From contig NC_043002.1 in the NCBI RefSeq assembly GCF_006345805.1, positions 78,616,001-78,680,000 on the forward strand: 64,000 bases of DNA. The letters run 5' to 3'. Below are positions 37,301 to 43,300 of this stretch, piece after piece. The position numbers and the translations under genes are program-made. Under the pieces are notes generated by a model. It had not been told where the DNA came from, ran no database searches, and worked only from the letters and a program-made list of their open reading frames with translations. Source of the DNA: Octopus sinensis (taxonomy: Eukaryota). The number at the start of each line of letters is the position of its first letter. The stretch's first letter is position 1.

Positions 37301-40300
37301 TATCAAATTAATTAGAGACTAGACACAAATACTGAAGTTTTCTAAAAACAAAGCAAAACAAAAAAGACAGAATAGGTGCAGGCCTAGCAGTATGGTTAAG
37401 AAGATTGCTTTGTAATCACCTGGTCTTAGATTCAATCTCATTTCCTCTCACACTACTCTTTCCCCATTACTTTTCATTTCCCTTACACTATCCCCTTTTT
37501 AAGCACTGACTCTTTTGGTTTCTCTTCTACGACCTTCCTCCTGTCATACTTTAACTTTTCACCCTCTCTCTTATTTTCTCTCTCAGTAATAGGGAGTTCT
37601 TTTAACCCTTTCATTACTGTATTATTTTGAGATGCTCTGTGTTTCTTTCAATTACTTTAAATATTACAAAGAATTTAGTAAAATAACTTAGTTATCATTC
37701 AGCTAGTGTTAGGAACATAAATTGTGACTAAGGTTTGGTAGATTTTAATTCAAAACTTATAAAAACAAGAAATTTGTACTCAGAGCCAGAGCCGGTTTCA
37801 GCTGGGTTGGTAATGAAAGGGTTAATTTTGCAAGTCACATGGGTACCTTTTAGTTGCTAGTACTGTAATAAATGTCCCACTTCACATACAATCTGTAAAC
37901 TGATCACACACAACACCAGGCTGAGCAGGCTAATTGATCTCATCAGTGACTTGACAGTGTCTTTGGTGCTCATGCCTCAATAAAATTCACCCAGTACATT
38001 CTGTAAAGTAGCTGATGTTGGGTAGGACATCCAGTTGTAAAAAACTGGGGAATCTGAGCAGGATATGATCCCTATGATCTGTCAAAGAGGGCTGTAATTA
38101 AAAGAACTGTCTCAGATCCTGGTAAGCTATCCAATCCATGCTAAGATAAAAATGGATGTAAAATAATATTGATGAAACATATAACTTGTGATAGCTCTAG
38201 GTCTTTCCTACTCTACCCACCCTTTCATCCTACTACTCAGTCCCTGTCTTTTTCAAACTAATCCCTGACACTACTCTTCCCCCATCTCCTTTCCCTTTCA
38301 TTAACTCCCACCCAACATTCTGTTATTCTTTCCATCTCTCACAACAATAAGTCTGTTTCTCCCATCATTCAATTACTTGCCCCAACAAATCACCAGAAAT
38401 CACCAATTTCTCCTATTCTCTCTTTTGTTGTGGAGGCTCTTTTGCCTTGCACATTACAAGGTGACCTCACTAGTTCTATTAGCACGAAAAAGTACTCATC
38501 ACACTCTGTAAAGTTGTTGGCAATTGGAAGAAATATAAACAAAGTCAAGAGGACTATTTAGCTTTGTTGAGAGCAAGACAAATGTAGTGCTGATACCATT
38601 GAAAAAATACAGTCTGTACACATTGTAAACTGGTTGGTGTAAGGAAGGGTATTCAACCCTTAGAAACCATGCCTTTAAAAAAAAAAAACATAACGAAACT
38701 GAGACTTAGGGCAAGATATGTTCTTGGAGACCTTGAAAATGAATTTCAGTGCTCCTCAACACTTTTTGGCCAAGAAGTCATTTAGAATCATAAAAAATTT
38801 AGTTTATAACCATAATTTTTTTTTTTGTTATATCTTTATCTTTTAAATTAGATTTTCATTATTTTTGTTTCATTTTAATCTGCTTAATATATTCCTTTGA
38901 GTAGGTTTTTGAGAAGATGTCAGACTACAATCTTCTCCGAGTTGGTCAAAGAAGAAAGTCAGTAAACTGTAATTATATTTTGCCAGGTAATACTCCTTTT
39001 CCATATTTATTTATATAGCCATAACTATTTTTATTCAGCTGATAAGTTCACCCAACATTCTCCTCTGTTTTTCTTTTCAACTCTCACAACAATAAATCTG
39101 TTTCTTCTGTCATTCATATGAACTCCAGTGTCTTTTAATTTTTTGCTTTGCTTTTAATTAGGATAGATACCTTATAGAGCCTCTGACCCCTTATAGGCTT
39201 TCCGAGACAGGTTGGAGGGAAGGAGAAAGGATGTTATTCTCTAACCAGAGACCTTGTCTGAATATTTGCAGTAGATCAGATTCCACTAAAGAACATGATC
39301 TGAACTTGGATCATAAAGAGCTGGAACAAACATCACAAGGCATCTTGTTTGATGTTCTTACAGTTCTATCAATCTACCACTTTGGATTGCTACTTTTATA
39401 TTTTGACCCTGAAAGGATGAAAGTCAATGTTGATATTCTATGTTGTGATGTCAAAGAGATACAAACACACACACACACACTTATGCACACATATATACAT
39501 ATATAAATATATATATATAAGACAAGTTATAGATAATAGTCATTACATATTTTCCCTTTATTAGAGCAAATTTGGCTTACAGCTGTCTCCAGTATTCATT
39601 ACAGGTATGTTACTGATAGGTCTACAGATTAGTTGAGAGAAATTGAACAACTTAGAAAAATTAATGCTATTTTCGCCAGAGCCATTTCTGGTTATAACAA
39701 AGCAGAACACTGAAGGAATGGTAAATGCATGGGGTAGGGAGGAAAAGATATACACATACGATAGGCTTTTTCAGTTTCTGTCTACCAAATCCACTCACAA
39801 AGCTTTATTTGCAAATGTGTGCAACACCCAGACACCAAACTGGCCAGCTGACGACCAGCATGGTGAAGAACTGCCATGATGATAGAACATGCACCACGTC
39901 ACTGGGGCAATGCAAATGCTACCGCTTATGCTATGCTTACCATGTGCCCTCACAAAACAGGACTAGAGTCAAGCTTGAGAGGGTCTTCTTTCCCCACCAA
40001 TCCATCCAAGCCTGTTCCTTTGGTTGTGGTTTTGCTAGACAATAGATAGGGACAGTGGAAATCTCATTGATCCGTTCATGTGCATCACTAATTAGATGAC
40101 GGCGCATTTGGCTACTTTATTTAACATATGACAATATATCCATTTCCCTATTTTTTTAACGTGGATGGTCCCATAATGCCCTGTCATTAGCAATGTCATG
40201 AACAGAAAATTAAGTGTCATTTCGAGATACCCAACTGTCCTGCCAAGCGGAAACAGTTAGATATATTCCAGATCATTACTGTCATTTTAACCCTTTCATT

Positions 40301-43300
40301 ACCAGCCTGGCTGAAACCGACTCTGGCTCTGAGTACAAATGTTTTCATAAGTTTTGAATTAAAATCTTCCACCAAACCTTAGTCACAATTTATGTTCCTA
40401 ACACTAGCTGAATGATAACTAAGTTATTTTACTAAATTCTTTGTTATATTTAAAGTAATTGAAAGAAATACAGAACATCTCAAAATAAATACAGTAATGA
40501 AAGGGTTAAAGTGGTTGGAGCTACTACCTATCATATAGCATTTAATGATCTAGCCTAATAGATATTTGAAGGCTAAGCCCTTGATATGTTATAAGTGTGA
40601 ATCATTGCAGTCCTGCTGAGTAGTCGCTGAAATGGCTGACCCCAAATTTCCAAGGCACACAGCGCTTCATTCACAGGTGAGAACCAAGCACTGCAGTCAC
40701 TGACAAGTCCATACACCTCTACCAGCCAATCAAACTCATAACGGAGCAGTGGAATGAGCGACTGATGTTTGCATACTTTCTCTTGAGCTACCTCATTCAA
40801 GACAGCTCACTGAGGATTACAAACACATTAATGCATAATCATATATAATCTTGTGTTTATTGCATGCCAATTCATCATCATCATCATCATCATCGTTTAA
40901 CATTCGCTTTCCACGCTAGCATGGGTTGGATGATTTGACTGAGGGCTGGCGAACCAGATGGCTGCACCAGGCTCTAAACTTGATCTGGCAGAGTTTCTAT
41001 GGCTGGATGCCCTTCCTAACGCCAACCACTCTGAGAGTGAAGTGGGCGCTTTTACGTGCCACCAGCACAAGTGCCAGTAAGGCGCTCTGGCAACAATCAT
41101 GCTCGGATAGTGCTCTTAGCTGTTAATAATAAATATTTTTCTCCTGAAATACACTAGTAATACCAAAATTATCCCATGCTCTTAACCACTACGCCATATG
41201 CCCCAAGATTCTGAGTTCAATTCCAGGCAGTGACCTTAATAATAATAATCATAATAAGAATAATAATAATAATAATAATAATAACATCGAAAAATACCTT
41301 AGGAATGAGAACCTAAGTTTGAAATTTCCTCAAGATACCTGATGAAGGCTGGAGGGTATATCAGCCGAAACGTTGTGTTAACAACAAACAAGATGAGGAC
41401 AAATATCCGTCAAATGTAAATAATGTAAATAATGTCCACTGAATTTTGTTGTTAGATGGAGAACAAGTACCATTCCTACATCTCTTTTGCATGCAAGTTA
41501 CCCTGGCAATATGCAAATGTTCAAGTTTGCAAACATTATCCAAGATATGTTTATATAAATGATGGGTATAGCAAAAGAATCACAAAAAAAGGTGAGACAG
41601 AAGCTGTAATATTCATACTTTGACTGCCATTGGGTGCAAGTATGATTGTGTTGTATGGTTAAGAAGTTCTCTTAACCACATTGCAGTTTTGAGTTAGATC
41701 TCACTGTAACCTTTGGCCTGTGTCCTCTATCAGTCTTGGGTTGATCAAAACCGTGAGCAAATTACTGGGTTACTGAATTTCTGAAGGAGAGAATGACAAG
41801 GGAGTGTCTGTAACTCATTGGTGAACTAACATCATCATATGCTTCCAGGTTTGATCCCACTGCATGGTACTTTATTTAAAAAGGCATTGTGTGTGAGATG
41901 AAGGTGAGTTAGTTTGCAGCTCAGTTCAAGATTGTGACCTGGTATTTTGGGATGAGTCCACTTTGTTGCAAGTATCTGTGCCAAGTCTCTGGTATGTGGA
42001 TACCTTCCCACCCACTGATCAGTTTTGGAGGTACAATAAAGGGTCATAGACAATGCCCTCTCTCCTACCTAAAAGATTGAAAAGAAAGTATTGGAGGCAA
42101 TTCCAGAAATGTTTTAGTCTTATTAGAATTACACATCACTGAACTTGCATATACATCACTGCAGTAATGCTGAGAGAACTACTAACTAGATATAAATGTT
42201 GAAAAACAAATGCACTTTAGAGAGTCAATTAATGACAACAGTTACCCAGGGACATGAAAGGCATTGGTCAAGTTACTGTTACTATATTTAAGACAGAGTA
42301 TTAAATGGTTATCATTATTATCATTACCATTTTTATGCCCACTTTACCATATTTACATTGCTTAGAAGAGTTCGTTCCAACATAGCTGCTCACCATTTGT
42401 TGTGTTCCTTTGTCAGGATGTTGTGTTCCTTTGTCCTACCTTCAGTGTTCACTATTTCTGCATATTCCTTCCTTCCTTCCTTCCTCCCCTTCCTCTCCCT
42501 CCTCTTTCCTTACCTATTCTCCTCCTCCTTCTTCCATAATTTCCTCCCACTTGGATCCCCTGGCACTTCTTTACCCTTCTCTTATCCATTTATATTATGT
42601 GTGTACCAGCATAGTCTTCTTTTTTGCACACTACAACTGATTCCTTTCATACCCTCTCTATTTCTCAGCTCATTTGTACCACTAACATTACACGTCCAGT
42701 GGAGAATGATTGCTTTATTTCTCTCTAGCCTTTGCATATCCTTTGCATTCAGTACCCATGTCTCACTATCACGTAGCATCTCACTTTGTATTCAAACACT
42801 GTACCATTTACCATTCACTTGATGAGAGAATATTATTGTTATCAACAGAAGCTGTAGCTCCTCTCTGTTCTTATTCTACTTACTATATTTTCTGAATATG
42901 CTCCACCACAATATTAGTTAATTATTAAAATTACCTAAGTTGGTGACTGGCACAATTGTTAGCAACATAATACAAAATGCTTGCAGTCCTTTACATCCTG
43001 AGTTTAAACCCTGCTAAAGTCAACTTTCACGATCAATAAACTAAAGTATCAATCAGTCAGGTACTGGGGTCAATGCAATAAACTTGTCACCTCCCCTCAA
43101 AATTACCAACCTTGAATCCTGCAATGGGCTGGTGTCCCATTCAGGGGAATGTTGTGATCTTAGTCCCTTATATGCCTTGGAAACTGGGTAACTGGTCTTA
43201 TAAATCGAAGAACATAAGAGACAAAAGAACAAAAAGAATAATATTATTTAAACCATTCCAGCAAGGTATAAAAATACAGGCAATAATGACTAGATATGTT

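Follow-up and report, generated by a model that had tools for sequence, protein, structure and literature searches.

R2 retrotransposons are transcribed together with the 28S ribosomal RNA (rRNA) gene in which they reside, and a ribozyme removes the upstream 28S sequence from the transcript (PMC3774820, PMC2718515). Octopod elements of this kind have been published as R2-1_OVu, R2-1_OSi, R2-1_ORu and R2-1_ECi, in a 2026 survey of animal R2 that also gives, for Octopus vulgaris and O. sinensis, the 28S sequence flanking R2 (Genome Biol 2026, PMC13188248, supplement 16). Copies outside the ribosomal DNA (rDNA) have been described in Drosophila, where several species carry non-rDNA R2 copies and where ectopic copies of R1 bear up to 14 nucleotides (nt) of downstream 28S, taken as a sign that 28S flanks are retained in the template RNAs (Stage and Eickbush 2009, PMC2718515). 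In fish there are R2 lineages with 28S-derived sequence in the 3' untranslated region (UTR) (Kojima et al. 2016, PMC5035012). Here we describe a further R2 copy, situated in a 64-kb stretch of the O. sinensis genome (contig NC_043002.1, positions 78,616,001 to 78,680,000), which we refer to throughout as the window; all coordinates are those of the window, and the R2 block is read on its minus strand. The block is a dead, 5'-truncated R2 copy that remains joined, through the canonical 3' junction, to 211 nt or more of downstream 28S, and it has no present function.

The locus was singled out in an original prediction made from the sequence alone, which listed a reading frame, a UTR interrupted by a miniature inverted-repeat transposable element (MITE), an R2/28S junction and a piece of 28S, in that order. 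All of these elements are present.

The R2 terminus and its 28S tail

The junction between R2 and 28S reads AAATAAAG|TAGCCAAATG at 40115|40114 and corresponds to the canonical ...TTAAGG|TAGCCAAATG site. The five bases that precede TAGCC in the window, TAAAG, match the TAAGG of 28S at four of five positions, and the junction is therefore exact to within 0-5 nt, as had been predicted. From 40114 to 39904 the sequence is identical to the published O. vulgaris 28S 3' flank at 187 of 211 positions (88.6%; no gaps, BLAST E = 1e-75). The Rfam model LSU_rRNA_eukarya gives 44.6 bits on the window (E = 1.3e-8), which is under its gathering score of 50, so that the assignment to 28S depends on the alignment that BLAST gives with octopus 28S; the Rfam alignment has high posterior probability only from GTAGCCAAAUGC, and what lies upstream of this in the alignment is noise running through the MITE. 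The matched region spans universally conserved helices together with an octopus-specific expansion-segment stretch, GGTAGCATTCGCGTTGCCCC, and the corresponding stretch reads differently in Eledone. The 250 nt of 28S upstream of the R2 site have no match in the 64-kb window, in keeping with the expectation that rDNA homology would not extend upstream of TAGCC, and an Rfam scan of the window detects no other rRNA.

The 28S piece bears the marks of long residence outside a functional gene. Thirteen of the 16 CpGs of the reference stretch are lost in the window, C>T or G>A changes accounting for 12 of the losses, and divergence at non-CpG positions is 6.1%; the piece is an old, methylation-decayed pseudogene fragment. 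The original prediction gave its length as about 220 nt, and decayed 28S of roughly this extent is present, although 39904 is an inward bound, as the piece ends no earlier than this and probably runs about 60 nt further, to approximately 39845. This extension is weak and suggestive only: when transitions are tolerated, its alignment reaches a score of 31.5, shuffles giving a mean of 21.6 (standard deviation 4.0; z ~2.5).

On the other side of the junction the reading frame ends NISRA* at the predicted stop (40573). It is open for 77 codons (40806-40576), and in a profile alignment its homology reaches back to about 40845, where a VDVTV motif is located, by way of two stops. The K..KY motif expected of an R2 endonuclease is present as a region but reads EKVCKH, with the tyrosine replaced by histidine. 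Compared directly with PDB and Pfam the 75-residue window peptide has no match, and a word-indexed homologue search with it yields no candidate. An exhaustive HMMER (phmmer) scan of 1.84 billion representatives returns five matches, four of which are short proteins that align with the peptide from end to end, including the position of the stop; the best, with E = 2e-10 and 50% identity, is a protein annotated in O. bimaculoides. The remaining match is to a long repeat protein and looks spurious.

Close relatives of the best-matching protein are found in O. vulgaris and O. sinensis. These proteins bear a CCHC motif, RHN, (I/L)PDLVF, V(I/V)DVTV and EK..KY, and the solved structures that they match are R2 proteins only (E = 2e-21 with a single sequence, 6e-45 with a family profile), the matches to bird R2 (R2Tg, 9dou) and to 9nl2/9nl3, deposited simply as "R2 retrotransposon protein", being stronger than those to Bombyx R2. 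When a 337-residue relative is compared with the window by tblastn, only 40800-40579 is matched, at 51% identity (E = 4e-16). Because the direct search of PDB and Pfam with the peptide gave nothing, its link to R2 is transitive but strong, and we take the peptide to represent the C-terminus of an R2-type protein, which bears out the predicted identity.

Only the last ~87 residues of the protein survive, and these comprise the C-terminal tail and the EK..K(Y/H) motif; the window copy is truncated downstream of the CCHC motif and of the catalytic aspartates. No R2 coding sequence resumes upstream of the block of short interspersed elements (SINEs) at 40847-41235. A look-alike, 'VLIPKVFF', near 41310 was considered as resumed R2 coding and rejected, its alignment scores being equal to those of shuffles.

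Related copies elsewhere in octopus genomes

To place the window copy we consider three further loci, obtained as the DNA around three annotated protein relatives. L001, on O. bimaculoides chromosome CM046606.1, has approximately 2.65 kb of R2 followed by 90 nt of downstream 28S; L002, on O. vulgaris chromosome OX597831.1, has approximately 4.0 kb followed by 231 nt (96% identical to 28S); and L003, on a 49-kb O. sinensis scaffold, has approximately 1.85 kb followed by 16 nt. The corresponding figures for the window copy, in its A2M-family intron, are approximately 0.5 kb and at least 211 nt. The exact 3' junction is kept at all four loci. In L001, L002 and L003 unrelated DNA follows the 28S tail, and neither the 250 nt of 28S before the R2 site nor any other rRNA piece is found in them. 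As flanks and tail lengths differ, the four loci are independent events and not duplicates of one another. The description of the window copy as an 'orphan' has to be abandoned, as at least three other copies share its build.

The zinc-finger/Myb region and the reverse transcriptase, both missing from the 5'-truncated window copy, are present in L002, which is nearly full-length and where the zinc-finger/Myb region is 52% identical to that of the published R2-1_OVu (E = 6e-63). By way of this relative, on which the assignment rests, the window copy would be an octopod R2 of the three-zinc-finger lineage. Its subfamily is nearest to that of L003 and is unlike the subfamily of L001 and L002.

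The UTR provides a second line of comparison. Excision of the MITE over the predicted interval (40291-40509) is exact and leaves a UTR of 239 nt, against the ~240 nt that had been claimed. This UTR is 73% identical over its full length to the 220-nt UTR of L003 (z = 8.1 against shuffles), and the alignment passes unbroken over the emptied MITE site. In its distal part the window has the motif ATGGGACCATCCAC..AAAAAAA..GGGAAA at 40174-40143; all four octopus copies have GTGGGACCNCCCAC, an A-run and GGGAAA 35-46 nt before the junction, and the same GTGGGACCNCCCAC..AAAA..GGGAAA motif is found in the 3'UTR of the published rDNA-resident Eledone element R2-1_ECi. On these grounds the window UTR is an R2 UTR. 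With the exception of the distal R2-1_ECi motif, neither the 5'UTRs nor the beginnings of the 3'UTRs published for R2-1_OVu, R2-1_ORu and R2-1_ECi show any similarity to the window. Because the start of its UTR is unlike that of R2-1_OVu, the window copy belongs to a different subfamily from that element.

The MITE itself has a 215-bp body (40505-40291) with terminal inverted repeats (TIRs) CCCTTTCATTAC...GTAATGAAAGGG, and is flanked by TTAA at 40509-40506 and 40290-40287. A second copy, 92.6% identical and in the opposite orientation, is situated at 37601-37825. The TTAA duplication and the second copy confirm that the element is of piggyBac type, as had been proposed, and its CCC...GGG TIRs, short non-coding body and presence in several copies agree with this.

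Some features of the individual relatives are recorded here in their own right. The 28S tails of L001 (4887-4976) and L002 (4914-5144) both have A at tail position 75 and T at position 81, and the L002 tail differs from the published O. vulgaris 28S also at positions 69 and 110-117, toward the Sepia/vertebrate sequence. These differences may stem from a divergent paralogue of the rDNA, or the tail may travel with that R2 subfamily. At L003 a repeated unit of about 200 bp (7199-7600) adjoins the R2 copy with its 16 nt of 28S, and the upstream flank is a different long interspersed element (LINE) and not the downstream repeat, which leaves no way to reconstruct an empty site. A 1007-nt Logan contig from SRR11869390 (L004) contains a GC-rich open R2 C-terminal reading frame and a GC-rich UTR, and ends before the junction; it looks like a much less decayed R2, and possibly an active one. 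A further Logan contig (L005) also ends before the junction and is uninformative.

Origin of the ectopic copies

We think it likely, with some reserve, that the window fossil arose by retroposition of an R2-28S co-transcript, a process that amounts to 3' transduction of 28S. In this model R2 would have resided in a 28S gene and been co-transcribed with it, and the R2 RNA would have retained some downstream 28S at its 3' end. This RNA would then have been copied into a non-rDNA site by target-primed reverse transcription, initiated within the 28S tail and ended prematurely in the open reading frame (ORF). The copy subsequently decayed, mainly by CpG deamination, and the piggyBac-type MITE later entered the UTR. 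The order of events that had been predicted, with R2 inserting in 28S, then transfer and finally the MITE, fits this scheme; the alignment of the UTR continues without a break where the MITE has been removed. The recurrent asymmetry of the copies, whose 3' tails are short and differ in length, whose 5' truncation varies and which lack a 5' flank, would be explained by reverse transcription that starts from the RNA 3' end and is abandoned early.

Several points weigh against retroposition. As to the target site duplications (TSDs) to be looked for around the whole block, a search between the flanks gives no direct repeat longer than 7 nt, with flanking SINEs obscuring the true ends and no empty orthologous site to define them. 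No A-rich or other tail is seen at the distal end of the 28S piece, and the position of that end is itself uncertain. The inserting enzyme could be R2's own protein acting off target or that of another LINE. Finally, the sample comprises four loci only, all found by way of the R2 C-terminus, and it is biased because any locus found in this manner must contain the junction.

A rival explanation is relocation at the DNA level, in which a piece of an R2-occupied rDNA unit would have been taken up at a chromosome break or shifted by recombination, as an 'orphon', with no RNA intermediate. Capture at a break predicts the lack of TSD and tail, neither of which was found, and recombination was weighed against retrotransposition for extra-rDNA R1 in the Drosophila study (PMC2718515). 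Random fragments of rDNA, however, should often bring with them 28S in kilobase lengths or, where the rDNA-resident copy was truncated, its 5' flank, whereas at all four loci only the downstream flank is kept and it is short (16-231 nt) by comparison with the R2 parts, which measure 0.5-4 kb; no upstream 28S and no further rDNA is found at any of the four. We therefore regard relocation at the DNA level as unlikely, while giving it serious consideration.

A different possibility is that the 28S-like tail is part of the element, that is, that an R2 subfamily has fixed 28S sequence in its 3'UTR and transposes outside the rDNA from variable start points in the tail. Fish R2 lineages with a 28S-derived 3'UTR exist, as do the non-specific R2NS families (PMC5035012), and the two differences from published octopus 28S that are shared by the tails of L001 and L002, from two species, would be in accord with this. 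The window tail lacks those differences, however, and follows genomic 28S into a species-specific expansion segment; moreover, tail lengths vary more than ten-fold, and the window subfamily, closest to L003, is not that of L001 and L002. An element-owned tail is for these reasons quite improbable.

The canonical junction would equally be produced by ordinary site-specific insertion of R2 into a 28S pseudogene fragment that was already present in the intron. Recognition of the target by R2 uses sequence on both sides of the cleavage site, whereas no upstream 28S is found in the 64-kb window or in L001-L003, and the same asymmetry is seen at four loci, so that we give this explanation even less credence.

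The window copy could, lastly, be a chimeric retrocopy in which a LINE reverse transcriptase began on the 60-nt SINE 3' module at 39806-39748 and switched template to the R2-28S RNA, the module lying 40-100 nt past the 28S piece in the same orientation (a proximity with a chance of about 2% given 13 other module copies in the window, by a rough and post hoc estimate), but no such module follows the 28S tails of L001-L003 (0 of 3), the intervening 40-100 nt are unassigned and nearly all SINEs of the intron have that orientation anyway, which makes this the least probable of the origins considered.

Returning to retroposition of a co-transcript, a broader proposition is that octopod R2 RNAs as a matter of routine retain downstream 28S, from tens to hundreds of bases of it, and are retrotransposed outside the rDNA. 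We put this forward only tentatively and consider it doubtful as a general rule. If true, ectopic copies of the R2-28S junction would constitute a dispersed family in which the 3' ends of the R2 template RNAs are naturally recorded, and this would bear on R2 initiation and on the design of R2-based gene insertion with added 28S 3' homology.

Genomic setting and comparison with known systems

The features of the block and of the surrounding host gene are collected in Table 1. A2M_BRD and A2M exons lie on either side of the fossil, on the plus strand, and it is thus intronic and antisense in an A2M-family gene, which upholds the predicted location. Pfam has no match at the further plus-strand exon, whose FPETWLW motif was recognised by eye, and the thioester exon of the gene is outside the window.

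Table 1. Features of the R2-28S block and of the A2M-family gene that surrounds it
Feature	Position	Strand	Basis or remark
R2 ORF remnant, last ~87 codons, restriction-like endonuclease/C-terminal region	40845 to 40576	-	50-52% identity to Octopus R2 C-termini
R2 stop codon TAG	40575-40573	-	same position as in relatives
R2 3'UTR, proximal part, 63 nt	40572 to 40510	-	aligns to L003 UTR
piggyBac-type MITE with TTAA on each side	40287-40509	.	later insertion in UTR; TIRs, TTAA, second window copy
R2 3'UTR, distal part, 172 nt, ending AAATAAAG at 40115	40286 to 40115	-	conserved motif and alignment
28S rDNA fragment, starting TAGCCAAATGCGCCGTCATCTAATTAGTG	40114 to 39904	-	211 nt ungapped, 88.6% identity
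28S expansion segment, probable continuation, strongly decayed	39903 to 39845	-	transition-tolerant alignment, suggestive only
60-nt 3'-terminal module of an abundant octopus SINE	39806 to 39748	-	same orientation as fossil; link to fossil speculative
SINE block ending (GAT)n plus 3' segment, abutting the 5' end of the R2 remnant	40847-41235	-	40870-41120 shared with other window copies
A2M_BRD exon	34866-35084	+	Pfam, 30.6 bits (cut-off 22.7)
A2M_BRD exon	35452-35691	+	Pfam, 25.4 bits (cut-off 22.7)
Further exon with FPETWLW motif	~49.9-50.0 kb		seen by eye
A2M exon	52930-53289	+	Pfam, 85.7 bits (cut-off 21)

Other elements are present in the region. Two copies of the abundant octopus SINE, at 39748-39806 and 51970-52029, are truncated at an identical point and retain just the 60-nt 3' module, which may be an independently mobilised, LINE-derived tail. 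At 15704-18551 there is a near-perfect palindrome of 2.85 kb, with arms 98-99% complementary, a centre near 17128 and a GC content of about 0.5 amid AT-rich DNA; this could be a foldback element or an assembly artefact. The plus strand of the A2M-family gene region also carries an intact 431-residue LINE reverse-transcriptase ORF (3411-4706), for which an exact look-up finds no called gene on record. At 26013-26850 and 59298-60250, also on the plus strand, are remnants of Tc1/mariner-like transposases, seen by eye in ORF translations.

Taken by itself the fossil is real but ordinary, since R2 in Octopus and Eledone and ectopic copies of rDNA elements are already known. The prediction held that it would show that this lineage carried R2; octopods do have R2, but this had already been published (PMC13188248), and the fossil alone adds nothing new on R2 host range. 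Its value is modest and lies in the pattern, for the recurrence and the length of 28S tails on ectopic octopus R2 copies are mildly new: four of four carry 28S downstream only, and far more of it than the 14 nt or less of Drosophila R1. Should this pattern hold across the genome, it would be evidence from nature that the template RNAs of R2 have their ends within 28S and are able to insert at off-target sites. The fossil is in addition a dated, CpG-decayed marker in an A2M-family intron, usable for comparative dating among Octopus species.

The closest known systems are the published octopod R2 elements, which share with the window copy the host group and the 28S junction |TAGCCAAATGCC. Those elements are situated in rDNA units and are complete or nearly so, whereas the window copy is approximately 0.5 kb long, outside the rDNA, decayed and interrupted. 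Since it has no upstream 28S and no other rRNA in the window, and is located in an A2M-family intron, the window copy is of R2 origin and yet not an rDNA-resident R2.

The ectopic R1 and R2 copies of Drosophila resemble those of octopus in being outside the rDNA, often incomplete, with an intact 3' junction and sometimes with downstream 28S. The co-inserted 28S in Drosophila, however, belongs to R1 and does not exceed 14 nt, whereas in octopus it belongs to R2 and ranges from 16 to more than 200 nt at all four loci. The fish R2 lineages are comparable in that there, too, DNA copies have been made from R2 RNA with downstream 28S included; in fish the 28S-like part is fixed and diverged and the element still inserts in 28S, whereas the octopus tails vary in length, match the host 28S and are found at non-rDNA sites. 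A further parallel is 3' transduction by human L1, in which read-through RNA brings flanking host sequence to a new site along with a 5'-truncated element. Human L1 has its own promoter, makes use of poly(A) signals located downstream and leaves behind TSDs and poly(A) tails, whereas neither tail nor TSD is seen in the octopus fossil.

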